From Bacillus subtilis subsp. subtilis str. 168 (GTDB taxonomy: Bacteria > Bacillota > Bacilli > Bacillales > Bacillaceae): a stretch of 64,000 nucleotides of DNA. The notes under the pieces are model-generated. The model was given only the letters and a program-made list of their open reading frames with translations. It was not told the DNA's origin and did no database searches. The position numbers were made by a program, and so were the translations under genes. Location: NCBI RefSeq assembly GCF_000009045.1, contig NC_000964.3, forward strand, positions 186,001-250,000, written 5' to 3'. Shown piece after piece: positions 6,051-24,946 of the stretch (the stretch's first letter is position 1; each line of letters begins with the position of its first letter).

Positions 6051-6965
6051 TCATGGATGGTAATGTTCGATTGCTTTGTCAATGAAACCGTTTGCTTCAT
6101 CGAGTAATGTCTGTGCTTGTTTCTGATCTGTGCTTGTTTTGAGCATGACGATTGCTGTTTTGACGTGATGATCGGCTTGTTCCAGAGTGTATCTGGCTGT
6201 GTCGTATGAAGCGTTTGTAAGGCTTTGGATGATGCTGATGGCGCGTTCTTTTAGTTTTTTGTTGCTGACGTTGACGTCTACCATCAAGTTTTCGTAAACC
6301 TTGCCGATTTTGACCATTACAGCGGTAGATATCATGTTTAGAATCATTTTATGAGCGGTTGCGGCTTTCATACGTGTTGATCCTGTAATGGCCTCAGGTC
6401 CGACGACAACCTCAATGCTGTGATCCGCATCCTTGCTGATGGCGGAATTTTCATTGCAAGTAAGGGCGATGGTGTGTGCTCCGACTTTACGGGCGTATCT
6501 TAGGGCGCCTGCGGCGTAGGGTGTGCGGCCGCTTGCTGCGATGGCAATGACGGTGTCATTTGAAGTGAGCTGTATGTTTCTTAAATCTTCAGCTCCTGCT
6601 TCTTCACTGTCTTCAATGCCCTCTGCTGCCTGTAAAAAGGCTTCGGGGCCTCCAGCCATGATTCCGATGACCTGATCTGGGCTTACGCTGTAGGTGGGAG
6701 GACATTCAACAGCATCCATGACGCCGAGTCTGCCGCTTGTGCCGGCGCCTGTATATATGAGCCGGCCTCCATTTTGAAACGATTCATATGCGCAGTCTAC
6801 AGCTGTTTTGATGTCGGGGAGAACCTCCTGAACGGCTGCAGCGACTTTCATATCTTCGTTGTTGATCATTTTAAGGATGCCGAGAGTGTTTGCTTTGTGG
6901 ATTTCAACTGTTTGACTATTGCGTGATTCCGTTGTAAGACGGTGAAGGTTTAATGGTTCTGACAT
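6051..6965 (-). CDS. murQ: N-acetylmuramic acid-6-phosphate etherase
   Basis: Start MSEPLN at 6965; [15 protein letters not shown] and GSTRMKA motifs. Confidence 0.96.
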
Positions 6966-8204: not shown

Positions 8205-8279
8205 GGCCCGTTGGTCAAGCGGTTAAGACACCGCCCTTTCACGGCGGTAACACGGGTTCGAATCCCGTACGGGTCACCA
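8205..8279 (+). tRNA. tRNA-Glu(TTC)
   Basis: Cloverleaf; anticodon stem ccgcc/ggcgg around TTC; GTTCGAATC T-loop; encoded CCA. Confidence 0.98.
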
Positions 8280-8282
8280 TTT

Positions 8283-8358
8283 GGAGGATTAGCTCAGCTG
8301 GGAGAGCATCTGCCTTACAAGCAGAGGGTCGGCGGTTCGAGCCCGTCATCCTCCACCA
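8283..8358 (+). tRNA. tRNA-Val(TAC)
   Basis: tctgc/gcaga stem around TAC; encoded CCA. Confidence 0.98.
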
Positions 8359-8362
8359 TCTT

Positions 8363-8435
<73 letters not shown>

Positions 8436-8457
8436 CTGTTTTTTCAAAATTTTATGT

Positions 8458-8542
8458 GGAGGGGTAGCGAAGTGGCTAAACGCGGCGGACTGTAAATCCG
8501 CTCCCTCAGGGTTCGGCAGTTCGAATCTGCCCCCCTCCACCA
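8458..8542 (+). tRNA. tRNA-Tyr(GTA)
   Basis: gcgga/tccgc stem around GTA; long variable arm; encoded CCA. Confidence 0.98.
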
Positions 8543-8546
8543 TTAT

Positions 8547-8618
8547 TGGGCTATAGCCAAGCGGTAAGGCAACGGACTTTGACTCCGTCATGCGTTGGTT
8601 CGAATCCAGCTAGCCCAG
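8547..8618 (+). tRNA. tRNA-Gln(TTG), no encoded CCA
   Basis: acgga/tccgt stem around TTG; followed by TCA. Confidence 0.97.
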
Positions 8619-13959: not shown

Positions 13960-14027
13960 CAAGCTTGTCTTGTTCTTATTTTCTCAATAGGAAAAGAAGA
14001 CGGGATTATTGCTTTACCTATAATTAT

Positions 14028-14186
14028 AGCGCCCGAACTAAGCGCCCGGAAAAAGGCTTAGTTGACGAGGATGGAGGTTATCGAATTTTCGGCGGATGCC
14101 TCCCGGCTGAGTGTGCAGATCACAGCCGTAAGGATTTCTTCAAACCAAGGGGGTGACTCCTTGAACAAAGAGAAATCACATGATCT
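14028..14186 (+). ncRNA. glmS ribozyme (GlcN6P-activated self-cleaving riboswitch)
   Basis: Conserved A/GCGCC cleavage site at 14028/14029, core GACGAGG, P1-P4 in the glmS leader. Confidence 0.96.
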
Positions 14187-14276
14187 TCCAAAAAACATGT
14201 AGGAGGGGACGATTGAAAGTCCCCTTGAAATTTGACTTTCTTCGTCTCCTTTTACAATCTTAGGAGGAAGAAAAAT

Positions 14277-17728: not shown

Positions 17729-18364
17729 ATGCCGGATAGTATCAATAACGGACATAAAGAGAGCCATGATCATAGAATTTCGAATGATGCAGAAATGATA
17801 ACAGATGAAAAGTGGCAAGCAATTATAAATAATGATGCAGCGTACAATAATCAATTTTTCTACGCTGTTAAATCGACAGGGATATTCTGTAAACCATCCT
17901 GTAAATCTCGCGTTCCGAAAAAAGAAAATGTATGTATCTTTCCAAACACAGAACAAGCTCTCCGCGCAAATTTTCGCCCTTGTAAACGTTGCAAGCCCAC
18001 TAATGAAAAAATGCCTGATAGCGAGTGGGTTGATTTAATTACTGAATACATTGATAAAAATTTCACAGAAAAATTAACGCTAGAATCGTTAGCAGATATT
18101 TGTCATGGGAGTCCGTATCATATGCATCGAACATTTAAAAAAATTAAAGGCATTACGCTGGTTGAGTATATACAACAAGTTAGAGTACACGCGGCTAAAA
18201 AGTATTTGATTCAGACAAATAAAGCGATTGGAGATATCGCTATATGTGTGGGTATAGCTAACGCGCCTTATTTTATTACTTTATTTAAAAAGAAAACTGG
18301 ACAGACACCAGCACGATTTCGTCAAATGAGTAAAATGGAGGAAACGTACAATGGAAACAAATAA
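17729..18364 (+). CDS. adaA: Methylphosphotriester-DNA alkyltransferase / AraC activator
   Basis: Ada Zn site FCKPSCKSR...RPCKRC plus AraC HTH. Confidence 0.97.
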   Translation: MPDSINNGHKESHDHRISNDAEMITDEKWQAIINNDAAYNNQFFYAVKSTGIFCKPSCKSRVPKKENVCIFPNTEQALRANFRPCKRCKPTNEKMPDSEWVDLITEYIDKNFTEKLTLESLADICHGSPYHMHRTFKKIKGITLVEYIQQVRVHAAKKYLIQTNKAIGDIAICVGIANAPYFITLFKKKTGQTPARFRQMSKMEETYNGNK

Positions 18365-18890
18365 ACCAACCCTTTATTGGTCTTTACTAATGTTCAAGGA
18401 TTGGAATTTTTATATTGCTTCAACTTTAAAGGGGCTTGTGTTTGTAGGTTCACAGAACAAACCAATCGAGGAATTGTTCGAATGGGCTAGGAAACGCTTT
18501 CCGGGAAGTCTTCTTGTTGAAGATGATGATAAGCTTGAACCCTATGCCGTTGAAATCACTCAATATCTAGAAGGAAAGCGGAAAAACTTTACTGTTCCAG
18601 TTGAGTACGCCGGTACGCAATTTCAGCTAGCCGTCTGGAATGCACTTTGTGAAATTCCTTATGGACAGACGAAATCCTATTCCGACATTGCAAATGATAT
18701 AAATAAACCAGCAGCTGTTCGTGCTGTAGGTGCGGCTATTGGGGCTAATCCGGTATTAATTACTGTACCGTGCCATCGTGTAATAGGAAAGAATGGCTCA
18801 TTAACTGGCTATCGGGGCGGATTTGAAATGAAGACACTGCTCCTCGATCTGGAAAAGCGAGCTTCATCTGAAATGGATGTTCCTCATTGA
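18351..18890 (+). CDS. adaB: O6-methylguanine-DNA methyltransferase
   Basis: PCHRV active site. Confidence 0.97.
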   Translation: METNKPTLYWSLLMFKDWNFYIASTLKGLVFVGSQNKPIEELFEWARKRFPGSLLVEDDDKLEPYAVEITQYLEGKRKNFTVPVEYAGTQFQLAVWNALCEIPYGQTKSYSDIANDINKPAAVRAVGAAIGANPVLITVPCHRVIGKNGSLTGYRGGFEMKTLLLDLEKRASSEMDVPH

Positions 18891-18955: not shown

Positions 18956-18984
18956 TTGACAACTTTTAAAATTTAGCATATCTT
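18956..18984 (+). promoter_or_regulatory. Candidate sigmaA promoter of the ndhF operon
   Basis: TTGACA-17-TATCTT about 420 nt upstream of the ndhF ATG. Confidence 0.6.
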
Positions 18985-19231
18985 ATACGTAACTTAATAA
19001 TCGATGCAGATGTTTATTTTTCCTTTTAAAATATGTAGGCCTTTAGCATTCTTTTCATATTTCATTTTAAATATTGATAGGATGAAAAAGTATCCTAATA
19101 AAAAAGGAAGAGAACATGAGTCGATTTATTTGATAATCAGGACTATATTAAAGGAAATGAAAACATAGCATAAAGTAAAGACCAATAATAAGGTAGCTCT
19201 TCAAAAAACTTCGCTGAAGTTAGTTGAAGTG

Positions 19232-19299
19232 AAGCCGACAATTTTCAGGATTCAATGATCTAACATAATCATTGAAATTTTGAAGTTGTCGGCTTTTTT
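19232..19299 (+). terminator. Long terminator-like hairpin inside the ndhF leader (candidate attenuator)
   Basis: AAGCCGACAA...TTCAATGAT/ATCATTGAA...TTGTCGGCTT followed by TTTT, 110 nt before the ATG. Confidence 0.75.
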
Positions 19300-19408
19300 G
19301 TTGGAAAAAAATAGAGATAAATAAAAATTGAAATAAATAATAGACAAATATGATCTGATTGAAAGGTCTTTTGACCAATAATGAGTTTTAAAAAAGGGAG
19401 AATTTAGA

Positions 19409-20926
19409 ATGTTAGTTTCGCTGAGTTTGTCATCATTATTAACATTATTTTTTATTATGCTTATGGCTTCTGGGATTAGTGGACTATTGTTTTTACATCC
19501 GCGTGTACCCTTGAGTTTTGTTCGCATTCATATTGGGATCTTGGCTTTACCACTTTTGGTTTCCTTACTGATTCTTGCCAATAGTGGTGTGAGTGGAAAT
19601 GTTGGCCCTTGGCACTTAGATTCCTTAGCTTGTTTAATGACTTTCTTTGTTCTTGCAATTGGATTCATCATTCAGCGTTTTTCTGTACGTTACTTAATGG
19701 GGGATCGATCTTATCGAAAATATTTTACGCTTTTTACTTTCACAACAGGAGCTGCTTCAATGACATGGTTAAGTGGTGATCTCCGCTTGATGGTTCTATT
19801 TTGGGGAGCAACTCTTGTTGGTTTAACCTTACTTATAAGGTTAAACAGTGCTTGGCAAGTGGCTAGTGAAGCAGCCAAAATTTCTGGACGGTTATTTTTG
19901 TTAAGTTGGTTTTCTTTGTTTTTTGCGATGATGTGGCTTTTTCATGCCACAGGTCAATGGCAGCTATCATTGGTTGTAACAAATGAAAGTTTAGCTGGGC
20001 TGGGAGAATGGGAGAGAACAGGGATTCAGCTATTGATTGTACTGGCGGTGATCATTCCTGCAGCTCAATGGCCGTTCCAAAGATGGTTGGTTGAGTCTAT
20101 TGTTGCTCCCACCCCAGTTTCTGCAATTATGCATGCAGGTTTAGTAAATGCTGGAGGAATAATACTAACTCGATTTTCACCTCTATTTCATGGTGGTATC
20201 GCTTCGATTATCTTACTTCTGCTTGCTAGCATTTCTGTATTGATTGGAACTGGAATTAGTTTAGTTCAGGTTGATTATAAACGCCAGTTAGTAGGCTCCA
20301 CGATTGGACAAATGGGGTTTATGCTCATTCAGTGTGCATTAGGCGCCTATATAGCAGCCATTATTCACCTTATTTTACATGGTTTATTCAAGGCTACGTT
20401 GTTTCTACAGGCTGGTTCAGCAGTAGGGCGTCATGAAGTATCGACTCGCACTAATGAAAGAACATCCTATTTATGGGTCATGGCTGGTCGGATTTTATCC
20501 TTAGTTATAGGTGTTGCTTTTTGGCTCACTGCTCCTGGAGACGGGTATCACTTAATCAGTGCGCTGATCTTAGGGTGGTCATTGTCCGTTTCTTGGGATC
20601 AGCTTGTCGCTTTTGGAGAGGGCCGAATTGGCCGGATTGCCGGTTTAACTGTTTTAGGAGGAGCAGCCCTCGTATATTTTATCATTCATCACCTTTTCTA
20701 TAAGTGGCTGCATACAACCATTTTTCAAAGTGTTCAACCTCCAATGTCAGCTGTCATGATTGTCGTATGTCTCTTACTCTTTGGCAGTGCTTTAGGTACG
20801 TGGGTTGCTCGTCATCGTTCTTCCGTTTTTTTCGCGGTACTCTATCTTTGGTTAGTCCGATTAGGTGAAGCAAAACCAAAGTCAGTAGAGAGTCACCCAG
20901 ACTACCTTAAACAATATATTTCATAA
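19409..20926 (+). CDS. ndhF: NuoL/MrpA-like membrane subunit of an inorganic-carbon transporter (DabB/MpsA type)
   Basis: Polytopic; AQWPFQRWL, PTPVSAIMHAG, DYKRQL and HGLFKA motifs; adjacent to a DUF2309 gene. Confidence 0.92.
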   Translation: MLVSLSLSSLLTLFFIMLMASGISGLLFLHPRVPLSFVRIHIGILALPLLVSLLILANSGVSGNVGPWHLDSLACLMTFFVLAIGFIIQRFSVRYLMGDRSYRKYFTLFTFTTGAASMTWLSGDLRLMVLFWGATLVGLTLLIRLNSAWQVASEAAKISGRLFLLSWFSLFFAMMWLFHATGQWQLSLVVTNESLAGLGEWERTGIQLLIVLAVIIPAAQWPFQRWLVESIVAPTPVSAIMHAGLVNAGGIILTRFSPLFHGGIASIILLLLASISVLIGTGISLVQVDYKRQLVGSTIGQMGFMLIQCALGAYIAAIIHLILHGLFKATLFLQAGSAVGRHEVSTRTNERTSYLWVMAGRILSLVIGVAFWLTAPGDGYHLISALILGWSLSVSWDQLVAFGEGRIGRIAGLTVLGGAALVYFIIHHLFYKWLHTTIFQSVQPPMSAVMIVVCLLLFGSALGTWVARHRSSVFFAVLYLWLVRLGEAKPKSVESHPDYLKQYIS

Positions 20927-20940
20927 GGAGCTAATCTGAG

Positions 20941-23556
20941 ATGGGCATTACATCCGTATTAACGAAAGATAATGTAAAAAAGATAGATACAGATATTGAT
21001 GTTCAAGAAAGGGATCTTAACGTTTTCATTACATCTGCCAGCCGAGTGATTGCGCCACTTTGGCCTATTTCTACATTTGCTGCACGTAATCCGTGGATGG
21101 GACTTGAAAACCAACCTTTTGATCAGGTTGCAAGTTGGTTGAAAAACACTCGCGATGTTGATATATACCCTAGTGCGTCTATGATCCGTTCAGCAAAGAA
21201 TAAAGGTGAGATTGATGAAGATTTTGTGGAAATGGGGCTGCAGCGTTGGCTTGATTCACATTCCTATCACATCCCACGGGACGTAGCAGAGCGATTTTGT
21301 CATGCTGCATTAAAGTTAGATCCCCTGCCTTCCGACCTTTTATCATCACATGAGCTGGAGAAATTAGTAAGTGAATGTAGTGGATTGGATCATATCGAGA
21401 ATGTGTTTATGCAGCCACTAAGTTCGTATATAGAGAATCAAGATGGTGAAAGGCTAGTCAATATACTAGATCATCATGTCATTAAATGGAGTAAATTATA
21501 TCTTGATGACTCTCAAGCGGGTTGGACAATGCCTAATCGTGAGGAAGGTTTCTATCGTGCTTGGCAGCATCTTATTCAATATGATCCAGCACTTAGCAAA
21601 AAGCAGCGAGAAAGGGTAAAAGGTTGGCCGAAAGAGGCACATTTGGCTTTACAAGAAGCTTTATTCGCACTAGAAATCCCAGAGTCAGAAATCCAGACTT
21701 ATCTTGAAGGTCATTTACTTTCATTACCTGGATGGGCAGGGATGATGCTTTGGCGCTCCCAACAATCGAGCCACGAACATGCACTACTAACAGAATATTT
21801 AGCGGTTCGAATATCCATGGAGTGGGCTCTTATAAAGCCATACTTACCTTTGACTAATGAACGATCTAAGAAAACAATTTCAATTGCTCCCCTTATAGCA
21901 GCTTGGATTCATTGGGGTGGGCTTACATTAGAAGAATGGTCACAGATGACGGCCAGTGAACAAAACGAATATTTATCATTTGCCTACAGCTTTGATGAGA
22001 AACTTCGCAAGAAACTTTGGTTAGAAGCTTGGGAACAAACGTACACTGATCGATTAAGCCAGAAGATCATCTCGAAACAACGTGAAACCGGCCGTGAAAA
22101 ATCTGCATTAGCTCAATTAGCATTCTGCATCGATGTACGATCAGAACCTTTTCGTCGTCAACTAGAAAAAGAAGGCCCGTTTGAAACGATTGGTATTGCT
22201 GGTTTCTTCGGGGTGCCGATTGCAACTTGTGAACTTGGCAGTAAACACAGTCATGCTTCCTTGCCGATCATACAAAAACCGCAAAATAAAATAAAAGAGT
22301 TCGCAGATGAGGATGTATTCAAAAAATACAATCAACGGAAGCAAGCAATTCATTCTTTAAGCCATACCTTTAAAACGATGAAGCAGAATGCGCTTTCGAG
22401 CTTACTACTGCCTGAGCTAAGTGGACCTTGGCTTACTCTGCAAATGGCAGCCCGTAGCTTTGTGCCAAGAAAGGCGGGTCGTTTCATTCGTAATCTCCGT
22501 GAGGCTTGGTTACGCAAACCTGATACAAAACTCTCGCTTCATCATGATGCTACAGAGGCAGAAATACCTGTGGGTTTTACTGATGAAGAAAAAGTGAACT
22601 ATGCTCGCCAAGCATTAAAAATGATGGGGTTAACAGAGAACATCGCACCATTGGTCGTGATTTGTGGGCATGGCAGTCAAAGTACTAATAATCCTTATTC
22701 TGCAGCCCTTGATTGTGGTGCCTGTGGTGGAGCGGCCGGTGGATTCAATGCAAGAGTTTTAGCTGCTTTATGTAATCTATCAGAGGTACGAGAAGCTCTT
22801 TTAGCTGAAGGAATTAAAATTCCTGAGGATACAGTTTTTGCAGCAGCTGAACATAATACAACAGTAGATGAATTACATTGGCTTTATGTACCAGAGCTTT
22901 CCGAAGCTGCACAAGAAGCATTTGAACAAATTGAAGCCGTTATGCCGAAAGTGAGACATCATGTAAACGCAGAACGTCTAGCCCAATTACCGAATTTCCA
23001 ATCGAAGCTAAAAAATCCGAAGGCTGAGGCAAACCGATTTGCGGAAGATTGGAGTGAGATACGTCCGGAATGGGGACTGGCTCGTAATGCCGCTTTTATT
23101 ATCGGTAAACGTGAATTAACTCAGGATTGTGATTTGGAAGGCAGAGCCTTTCTCCATAATTATGATTGGAAGCAGGATGAAAGCGGTGAACTCCTAGCAA
23201 ATATTATTGTAGGACCTGGAACTGTAGCCCAATGGATTAATTTACAATATTACGCATCAACGGTAGCACCTCATTATTATGGCAGCGGAAATAAAGCAAC
23301 TCAAACCGTTACTGCAGGTCTCGGCGTTATGCAGGGGAATGCAAGCGATTTGTTAGCCGGACTGCCTTGGCAATCCGTCATGGAATCAGATCACGAGGCC
23401 TATCATTCTCCTCTTCGTTTATTGATACTCATCCAAGCACCTAGAGAATATGTAGAACGGTTATTAAATCATGATTCAGCATTTCTGCAAAAAGTTCAAA
23501 ATGGATGGGTCCGACTGGCTAGTCTTGATCCAGAAGGATGTTGGGAAAGCTGGTAA
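20941..23556 (+). CDS. ybcC: DUF2309 soluble subunit (DabA/MpsB type), beta-carbonic-anhydrase-like Zn site
   Basis: FCIDVRSE, GHGS, LDCGACGG and EHNTT motifs. Confidence 0.92.
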   Translation: MGITSVLTKDNVKKIDTDIDVQERDLNVFITSASRVIAPLWPISTFAARNPWMGLENQPFDQVASWLKNTRDVDIYPSASMIRSAKNKGEIDEDFVEMGLQRWLDSHSYHIPRDVAERFCHAALKLDPLPSDLLSSHELEKLVSECSGLDHIENVFMQPLSSYIENQDGERLVNILDHHVIKWSKLYLDDSQAGWTMPNREEGFYRAWQHLIQYDPALSKKQRERVKGWPKEAHLALQEALFALEIPESEIQTYLEGHLLSLPGWAGMMLWRSQQSSHEHALLTEYLAVRISMEWALIKPYLPLTNERSKKTISIAPLIAAWIHWGGLTLEEWSQMTASEQNEYLSFAYSFDEKLRKKLWLEAWEQTYTDRLSQKIISKQRETGREKSALAQLAFCIDVRSEPFRRQLEKEGPFETIGIAGFFGVPIATCELGSKHSHASLPIIQKPQNKIKEFADEDVFKKYNQRKQAIHSLSHTFKTMKQNALSSLLLPELSGPWLTLQMAARSFVPRKAGRFIRNLREAWLRKPDTKLSLHHDATEAEIPVGFTDEEKVNYARQALKMMGLTENIAPLVVICGHGSQSTNNPYSAALDCGACGGAAGGFNARVLAALCNLSEVREALLAEGIKIPEDTVFAAAEHNTTVDELHWLYVPELSEAAQEAFEQIEAVMPKVRHHVNAERLAQLPNFQSKLKNPKAEANRFAEDWSEIRPEWGLARNAAFIIGKRELTQDCDLEGRAFLHNYDWKQDESGELLANIIVGPGTVAQWINLQYYASTVAPHYYGSGNKATQTVTAGLGVMQGNASDLLAGLPWQSVMESDHEAYHSPLRLLILIQAPREYVERLLNHDSAFLQKVQNGWVRLASLDPEGCWESW

Positions 23557-24571: not shown

Positions 24572-24946
24572 ATGAAAAAGTCTAAGGGTTCTATTGAATC
24601 AGAGATCAGTAAGTCCATTACTCAATGGGAGAAGGATTATCTTGGGCGGGGGTCTGTATCTGTTAAGACTGATATACTGCGGGACATGATCATCGTCAAT
24701 TTAAAAGGGATTTTAACACCAGCCGAATATGTAGTTTGTGGATCAAAAGAGGGTATGTTATCTATCAAACAAACTCGTTCAGAGTTAGTCGAATCAGGTA
24801 TAGAAGGCCTTAAGGATATTATCTTAAAAATAACCGGAGAAAAAGTGAAAAGTTTTCATACTGATTTAAGCTCCCGGACAGGTGAACGAGTGATGGTATT
24901 TAAATTATGTAATGATCTAGAGAAAAATTTGGAAAAGATCTTATAA
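24572..24946 (+). CDS. ybcI: DUF2294 (MpsC-like) protein
   Basis: EKDYLGRGSVSVKTDIL and FHTDLSSRTGERVMVF family motifs. Confidence 0.88.
   Translation: MKKSKGSIESEISKSITQWEKDYLGRGSVSVKTDILRDMIIVNLKGILTPAEYVVCGSKEGMLSIKQTRSELVESGIEGLKDIILKITGEKVKSFHTDLSSRTGERVMVFKLCNDLEKNLEKIL

Follow-up and report, generated by a model that had tools for sequence, protein, structure and literature searches.

A deeply conserved candidate attenuator leader upstream of the inorganic-carbon pump operon of Bacillus subtilis and its probable relation to Staphylococcus aureus Teg41

Inorganic-carbon pumps of the MpsAB/DAB type underlie the growth of heterotrophic Firmicutes, including Staphylococcus aureus, at atmospheric CO2. 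In S. aureus, the RNA Teg41 (RsaX05, sRNA095, srn_1080, or SAUSA300s087) is encoded ~85 bp upstream of ndhF and has been described as a trans-acting activator of psm-alpha that also acts from a plasmid (PMC6428751). Its published distribution is confined to S. aureus and S. argenteus. Two earlier studies had guessed that it was a "cis-acting leader of ndhF" (Geissmann 2009, Beaume 2010). Deletion of Teg41 was not achieved, which the authors attribute to loss of the ndhF promoter (PMC6428751); a failed deletion together with a suspected ndhF promoter is what a leader model predicts. In B. subtilis, small-RNA screens listed the candidate ncr181 (Irnov 2010), or ncr4 (Rasmussen 2009), which corresponds in locus, strand, and transcript to the leader described here, and the locus is also candidate no. 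77 of an entropy-based riboswitch scan (PMC4448311). The ncr181 listing comprised 2 reads and the label "B. subtilis only," and gave no structure, conservation, or function. That label is a product of the genomes open to BLAST in 2010, and the Bacillales-wide conservation and the link to Teg41 reported below are new relative to the ncr181 and ncr4 listings.

In architecture, the element resembles terminator-type riboswitches and protein-dependent attenuators (ydaO/c-di-AMP, Na+ DUF1646, PyrR, TRAP, LicT/RAT) in that a structured, conserved leader stands directly 5′ of an intrinsic terminator, here in front of a transporter operon. It differs from known Firmicutes riboswitches and attenuators in having no Rfam sequence or structure match and no covarying antiterminator that we could find. 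Searches of the leader against Rfam at permissive thresholds returned as best matches microRNA and snoRNA noise (E ≥ 0.13, with scores well short of each family's gathering score), the search of four related loci produced no match, and no membership was found at the gathering threshold in families including ydaO-yuaA, DUF1646, T-box, yybP-ykoY, Bacillaceae-1, and the Rsa RNAs. An earlier sequence-only reading of this DNA, which recognized no known riboswitch class in the leader, was right on this point. On our best reading, the element is a deeply conserved but orphan attenuator that serves the inorganic-carbon pump of Bacillales and belongs among the terminator-based cis-regulatory leaders; it is probably a so far unrecognized on/off switch of a CO2/bicarbonate uptake system. 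Specifically, we propose, with a probability of roughly 0.7, that positions 18956 to 19300 hold a promoter and a ~310-nucleotide (nt) cis-acting leader RNA that controls the ndhF-ybcC-ybcF-ybcH-ybcI operon by transcription attenuation. A cis-acting switch, possibly bound by an operon-encoded protein, had already been suggested in the sequence-only reading and is still the interpretation that we prefer.

The window analyzed here is a 64,000-nt stretch of the B. subtilis subsp. subtilis str. 168 chromosome (NC_000964.3, positions 186,001 to 250,000). Adding 186000 to a window coordinate gives the genome coordinate; genome position 205300 was equated with window position 19300 by an exact match to the Term-seq 3′-end sequence, and a second coordinate list was concordant. 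The genes around the leader are glmS, alkA, adaA, adaB, ndhF, ybcC (DabA), ybcH (DUF6407), and ybcI (MpsC), and the operon that follows it runs ndhF(mpsA)-ybcC(mpsB)-ybcF-ybcH-ybcI. It has been described as encoding an MpsAB/DAB-type inorganic-carbon transporter together with a carbonic anhydrase and MpsC (bioRxiv 10.64898/2026.09.08.750065). Rfam families found in the entire window were the glmS ribozyme and tRNAs, and nothing else. Features and their coordinates are collected in Table 1.

Table 1. Features of the leader and its surroundings, in window coordinates
Feature	Position	Strand	Basis or detail
Promoter TTGACA-17-TATCTT	18956..18984	+	Sigma-A-like, 10/12 consensus positions; conservation begins at the -35 box
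Probable transcription start	18991	+	ncr181 cDNA onset at 204991 (Irnov 2010), 7 nt past the -10 hexamer; 2 reads, shared coordinate system assumed
Conserved 5′ block a1 (AAUAAUCG..AGAUGUUUAUU)	18994..19022	+	Column conservation
Hairpin HA	19036..19097	+	RNAalifold prediction, pairing, and limited covariation
HA outer helix UAGG:CCUA	19036-39/19094-97	+	
HA base stem CUUU:AAAG	19041-44/19087-90	+	
HA 2x2 purine loop AG/AA	19045-46/19085-86	+	
HA middle stem CAUUC:GGAUG	19047-51/19080-84	+	
Conserved block GAAGAG(U)AACAU and T1 remnant	19106..19144	+	Alignment
Single-stranded GGUAG, proposed P1 5′ strand	19192..19196	+	GG and final G invariant
Hairpin H1 (outer stem, inner stem, loop GCU)	19197..19231	+	Covariation, models R1 and R2; core 19199-19229
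H1 2x2 purine loop AA/AG	19205-06/19222-23	+	
Intrinsic terminator T2, 28-bp imperfect hairpin and U tract	19232..19300	+	Folding, alignment, and Term-seq; in vivo 3′ end at 19300
Spacer from T2 to ndhF, weakly conserved	19301..19408	+	~40% column identity outside the ribosome-binding site AAGGGAG (19394-19400)
ndhF (mpsA/dabB), inorganic-carbon pump membrane subunit	19409..20926	+	NF006373, E = 1e-245
ybcC (mpsB/dabA)	20941..23556	+	PF10070 DabA, E = 8e-271
ybcI (mpsC), candidate trans-acting partner of the leader	24572..24946	+	PF10057/DUF2294, E = 2e-39
adaA, adaB	17729-18890		
glmS ribozyme	14017-14187	+	Rfam, 141.8 bits
Five-tRNA gene cluster	8205-8618	+	Rfam

Evidence for transcription comes from published data. 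The cDNA reads assigned to ncr181 (= ncr4) cover genome positions 204991 to 205148, corresponding to window positions 18991 to 19148 (Irnov 2010, PMC2965217). Term-seq of B. subtilis 168 places a 3′ end on the plus strand at 205300, with a coverage of 584 (Mandell 2021, PMC8060035); the hairpin listed with it is exactly T2 (−29.1 kcal/mol), and termination there is 98.8% in the wild type and 98.9 to 99.2% in the listed comparisons with nus mutants (PMC8060035). Together, the Term-seq 3′ end and the cDNA signal indicate that the leader is transcribed and that T2 is a real and highly efficient terminator. In the same study, ndhF mRNA was at ~2 to 3 transcripts per million (TPM) (PMC8060035). By itself the promoter match carries little weight, because a promoter scan returned 5 such sites where chance alone would give 4.8; its validation is conservation, with the -35 TTG conserved at 89 to 92% and the -10 positions at 55 to 94% in the column profile. 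Conservation and Term-seq bear out the sequence-only reading in that the inorganic-carbon operon is preceded by a long leader that is equipped with a promoter and ends in a strong terminator.

Conservation was assessed in 80 species, each represented by a single locus that encodes a relative of NdhF. BLASTN with the adaB-ndhF spacer matched 66 of the 80 at 68 to 85% identity, and nearly all matches ran from spacer position 66 (18956, the -35 box) to 19303 to 19310, just past the U tract. In the alignment, the leader was present in all 77 distinct sequences. Column identity rose from ~20% to ~90% at the -35 TTG, remained high through 19303, and was ~40% over the 100 nt before the ndhF ribosome-binding site, with the strongest conserved block at 19189 to 19300. 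No conserved promoter was found between T2 and ndhF (19301 to 19408) in the column profile of the aligned loci. The gene upstream was adaB in only 2 of the 80 loci; the element belongs to ndhF. The leader is conserved before mpsA in Bacilli, staphylococci, and relatives and is linked to mpsA and mpsC, whatever the upstream gene.

This arrangement bears on the alternative that the locus is a stand-alone, Teg41-like gene for a trans-acting small RNA, with its position before ndhF incidental and ndhF transcribed independently. The ncr181/ncr4 listings, the accumulation of a discrete RNA that follows from ~99% of transcripts ending at T2, and the trans effect of plasmid-borne Teg41 on the expression of psm-alpha (PMC6428751) would all suit such a gene. 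However, the element lies directly upstream of mpsA and in the same orientation in every species examined, with mpsC between its halves in some; no conserved promoter follows T2; and psm-alpha is limited to S. aureus and S. argenteus, whereas the RNA is found Bacillales-wide. A role in trans is compatible with a role in cis yet leaves the synteny unexplained, and we regard the stand-alone gene as improbable, although it is the strongest of the competing explanations.

The leader consists of two modules, A (hairpin HA and a terminator, T1) and B (GGKAG, hairpin H1, and T2). In module B, T2 forms a hairpin (19232 to 19295) followed by TTTTTTG. Its base, AAGCCGACAA:UUGUCGGCUU, is a G+C-based helix that abuts the UUUUUUG tract, as in intrinsic terminators, and the published Term-seq adds an efficient in vivo 3′ end at that tract. 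The segment from 19190 to 19305 folds at −42 kcal/mol (z = −6.3), which was equaled by 0 of 200 shuffles. Across the 77-sequence alignment, 10 of 12 H1 pairs showed changes on both sides. H1 and the T2 base taken together were 95.1% paired, compared with at most 51% when partners were slid, and 16 pairs had double-sided changes; 0 of 500 shuffles reached any of five measures. Clean compensatory changes were seen in Fredinandcohnia (AUUUUUAA..GACU/AGUC..UUAAAAAU), the staphylococci, and Paludifilum. The invariant bases of the module are GG.AG, AA, GUU, and A..CCG. The unit GGKAG-H1-AARCCG occurs as one strong copy per locus, and as two in tandem in Geobacillus. In one Geobacillus locus (L100, 6492 to 6687), two tandem GGGAG-H1-AAACCG units (58.8 and 43 bits with covariance model R2, which represents the H1 unit alone) share a single terminator between mpsC and mpsA, an arrangement that resembles tandem riboswitch aptamers.

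In module A, HA was 95 to 100% paired, compared with 23 to 77% with partners slid, and its outer helix had a folding energy of −3.78 kcal/mol with matched partners versus −2.45 kcal/mol with mismatched ones, a value that 0 of 5000 permutations equaled. Covariation was seen in the middle stem and the outer helix; the base stem is nearly invariant in the alignment, and S. aureus carries a compensatory GUCU:AGAC there. HA includes the near-invariant segments CUUUAGCA and AUGAAAAAG. On weak evidence, the block a1 may pair with the 5′ arm of T1 in the species that keep this terminator: the candidate helix was 83% paired, with 13 double-sided changes versus 5.3 in shuffles. T1 itself was intact in 17 of 72 leaders (e.g., L019, L035, L048, L064, and L066) and has decayed in the B. 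subtilis group. At 19119 to 19160, the window strain lacks ~20 to 30 nt (..AACGAUGAUUUCAUUCCUUUAGAAGGAAGUU..) that are present in its close relatives (L001 to L004 and L023); the missing nucleotides are the T1 3′ arm and U tract. A minor Term-seq 3′ end lies at 19132, with 0% termination (PMC8060035). A lack of structural conservation, which the sequence-only reading would have counted against its proposal, was not seen: structure is kept across ~80 species. As in riboswitches, a conserved structured domain stands 5′ of a gene, with covariation in H1, T2, and HA.

The same comparisons address control at the DNA level, by which operators at the promoter and at the long palindrome would be bound by a factor, possibly MpsC, with T2 DNA acting as a roadblock. 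Conservation of the promoter and its spacer is in keeping with this idea, as is the long inverted repeat of T2, whose arms are conserved in sequence within the Bacillaceae. The changes in H1, HA, and T2 are nevertheless compensatory in terms of RNA, including G-U pairs that are asymmetric in DNA, and neither H1 nor HA is a palindromic operator. Moreover, the promoter spacer and the T2 5′ arm agree at 8.4 of 18 positions versus 8.0 and 7.5, barely above the level given by composition. We consider DNA-level control quite improbable.

Still less probable is that the hairpin is merely the terminator of adaAB and the remainder unconstrained intergenic DNA. No other terminator follows adaB, the 3′ end at 205300 is annotated "adaB+410," and adaB reads are abundant (PMC8060035). 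In B. subtilis, adaAB transcripts probably do end at T2 as well, and a share of the Term-seq signal at 19300 may not derive from the leader promoter. Yet adaB is upstream in just the two species noted above, while every species retains the promoter, HA, H1, and T2, and the T2 arms are conserved in sequence far past the needs of termination. The expectation in the sequence-only reading that this hairpin is more than an adaAB terminator therefore held. In the published RNA-seq, adaB stood at ~95/39 TPM and its operon partner adaA at ~2.5 TPM (Mandell 2021, PMC8060035). This imbalance reflects either an internal promoter feeding adaB or a counting error; adaB transcripts of such a kind would enter the leader and terminate at T2.

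The promoter, the hairpins, and the ATGs at 19082, 19116, and 19157 reported in the sequence-only reading are all present. Two of its finer proposals fared less well. An antiterminator between CTTCAAAA (19199 to 19206) and TTTTGAAG (19278 to 19285) had been put forward; the complementarity exists, but it does not covary (77.6% paired versus 76.1% in column shuffles). This same pairing (CUUCAAAA:UUUUGAAG) was rejected as an antiterminator, as it showed no excess of double changes and as B. cereus and Fredinandcohnia alter the T2 arm without a matching change in H1. A systematic scan of module B for a covarying alternative helix returned only short A/U-rich or self-complementary matches; GUUG:CAAU was 96% paired, but at 4 bp is too short for reliance. 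As for the three short upstream open reading frames (uORFs), their ATGs stand, but the peptides are not conserved, and no conserved open frame was found on either strand of the leader. Because AUGAAAAAG is part of HA, whose 3′ strand contains the AUG at 19082, this "MKK" start codon appears conserved without a conserved frame. Ribosome-mediated attenuation through a leader peptide, to which the near invariance of that segment could be taken to point, is the least probable of the explanations considered here, as the frame from the conserved AUG runs from 3 to 38 codons by species and is often just MKK-stop, the AUG is paired within HA, no Shine-Dalgarno sequence was found at a proper distance from a uORF, and the other two uORFs lie in weakly conserved sequence.

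In rich medium, T2 halts ~99% of transcripts; under the attenuation model, operon expression would depend on read-through of T2. We propose that an effector stabilizes an extension of H1, termed P1, in which GG (19192-93) pairs with CC (19235-36). Since AAGCC (19232 to 19236) constitutes the first bases of T2 and the proposed 3′ strand of P1, formation of P1 would sequester the T2 base, leaving a hairpin that no longer abuts the U tract and allowing read-through. All 65 of 65 sequences carry both candidate pairing partners, GG and CC, unchanged, which puts P1 beyond the reach of covariation. P1 comprises only 2 G-C pairs plus non-canonical pairs, and its bridge to H1 would consist of three non-canonical, purine-rich pairs: G.A, A.A, and a third that varies among U.G, U-A, and G.A, with no instance of G.G (Fisher p = 1e-6, without correction for phylogeny). 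A 2x2 purine loop with AG opposite AA beside a C-G pair occurs in HA, below H1 at the junction, and, flipped, within H1. The proposed layout of P1 is that of HA, where the outer helix CUUU:AAAG (base stem in Table 1) clearly forms. Searches with R2 detected neither HA nor the H1 of S. aureus, and because R2 misses HA, the likeness of HA to the H1/P1 junction comes solely from the UAGC/GAAR loop. This recurring loop could serve as the recognition element. The effector might be MpsC/YbcI, or else a small ligand or ion reporting inorganic-carbon status, and the terminated leader would accumulate as the sRNA-like ncr181/ncr4, with Teg41 as its S. aureus counterpart.

In a bolder version of the attenuation model, the GGKAG-H1-AARCCG unit and HA would form an aptamer and define a new riboswitch class, one that responds directly to inorganic-carbon status and switches on the DAB/MpsAB pump across Bacillales, with Teg41 as the terminated form, secondarily used in trans. 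Candidate signals would then include bicarbonate itself, a metabolite that depends on it, and an associated ion. We hold this version to be tentative and rather unlikely; if the effector did prove to be a small molecule or ion, however, the leader would represent a new class of riboswitch. The sequence-only reading had named CO2/bicarbonate, Na+, and pH as candidate signals. Several conditions are known to affect the operon. Its mRNA is 7-fold up in c-di-AMP-null B. subtilis (PMC7857571), it is up in minimal medium and on heat shock (bioRxiv 10.64898/2026.09.08.750065), and it constitutes its own independently modulated gene set (iModulon). In S. aureus, mpsA is 1.7- to 2.5-fold down at 5% CO2 (PMC6689103). 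In these published cases, the change may lie in promoter activity and not in termination at T2. Whatever the signal, the leader offers a concrete and genetically tractable control element in B. subtilis 168, with defined nucleotides.

Scans of the neighboring genes with Pfam and NCBIfam revealed no regulator gene of the CAT/PRD, PyrR, TRAP, or HutP type. The obvious candidate partner is MpsC/YbcI, which has been without an assigned function since 2015. Its gene, encoding a small cytoplasmic protein, is always adjacent or linked to the leader. In at least 8 genomes, including Fredinandcohnia, Scopulibacillus, Paludifilum, and others, mpsC (120 amino acids) separates module A, which there carries a strong T1, from module B. 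Its position is just upstream of the entire leader in the B. cereus group, in Geobacillus it is followed by the tandem units and one terminator, and in B. subtilis and the staphylococci it is downstream within the operon. Where mpsC stands ahead of the whole leader, as in the B. cereus group and its relatives (L047, 1700 to 2000; L042, L025, and L040), we noted a short conserved stretch before the gene, ..UGAAAAUAgAA..AUCCAGAUUAUUAUAUUGUUAUUGUAA..; by eye, the stretch with AUCCAGAUUAUUAUAUUGUUAUUGUAA is unrelated to HA or H1. Among the best 120 of 913 matches, which include Staphylococcus, Geobacillus, and Alicyclobacillus, MpsC/YbcI shares 71 to 99% identity. B. subtilis YbcI and S. succinus MpsC are 76% identical, and B. 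subtilis NdhF and staphylococcal MpsA are 62 to 64% identical; by these sequence comparisons, MpsC is more conserved than MpsA. S. aureus does not need mpsC to grow in air, and the gene is also dispensable for transport in Escherichia coli (PMC6689103). This would suit a regulatory function, the simplest being negative or modulatory.

The AlphaFold model of MpsC (pLDDT 91.5) consists of two helix-plus-beta-hairpin repeats. A fold search of solved structures gave no significant match (best E = 8e-3, TM < 0.4), and a sequence search of the PDB gave none; judging from the model, YbcI/MpsC may have an undescribed fold. On these negative searches, the idea of MpsC as a recognizable nucleic-acid binder was rejected; weak likenesses to the DHp/CA domains of histidine kinases and to ribosomal protein uL23 were uninterpretable. 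The pI of MpsC is 6.4 to 8.9, atypical for an RNA binder. A literature search on mpsC, DUF2294, and ybcI turned up nothing relevant, and the TERMITe supplements hold no ndhF entry. The case that MpsC binds the leader is circumstantial.

Homology of Teg41 to the Bacillales leader was assessed with R1, a covariance model built without S. aureus sequences. A genome titled S. aureus MH_19I_MKU (L068) was rejected as a reference: its MpsA is 80% identical to that of S. saprophyticus and it lacks Teg41 and psm-alpha primer sites, and it is a mislabeled saprophyticus-group genome, or at least not S. aureus. True S. aureus loci were taken from metagenome contigs found by the Teg41 primer sequence, and the part from Teg41 to ndhF was examined. 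R1 matched 10 of 10 of these loci over the full model length, in the 3′ half of Teg41, at 30 to 41 bits; E ranged from 1e-5 to 2e-3 when 203 kb were searched and from 9e-7 to 4e-5 when 14 kb were searched. R2 found nothing on them at E ≤ 5. Teg41 shares with the leader its own promoter, its orientation, and a terminator ~70 to 110 nt upstream of ndhF/mpsA. By eye and by folding, it also has a compact HA (GUCU-AG-..-AA-..AGAC), a GUAACAU block, GGGAG, an H1 with the AG/AG loop and UAGUU, and a strong T2 (AAACCUGCAAU...AUUGUAGGUUUUU). Relative to the B. subtilis leader, its H1 is longer and its 5′ part shorter. From these likenesses we consider it probable, with moderate support, that Teg41 is homologous to the leader. 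Although it is studied as a species-restricted virulence sRNA, Teg41 seems to represent the S. aureus form of an ancient leader of mpsABC.

The mapped 3′ end of Teg41 falls within the T2 5′ arm, unlike the U-tract end in B. subtilis. Both the published end (477,487) and the 24-nt 3′ deletion lie in this arm (L084, ~6142 to 6164), ~45 nt before the U tract; the published end may reflect processing of the long duplex or a mapping artifact. The psm-alpha target should be absent from B. subtilis, given its restriction to S. aureus and S. argenteus in the Teg41 papers. Nucleotides 183 to 194 of Teg41, for which pairing with psm-alpha mRNA has been proposed and which Teg41-delta-3′ lacks, correspond to AAACCUGCAAUA, the conserved T2 base. 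Loss of the Teg41 band in Teg41-delta-3′ could therefore result from read-through into mpsA rather than from instability. As the 24-nt deletion removes the conserved terminator 5′ arm, it may also alter mpsABC expression, which would be a confound for that construct.
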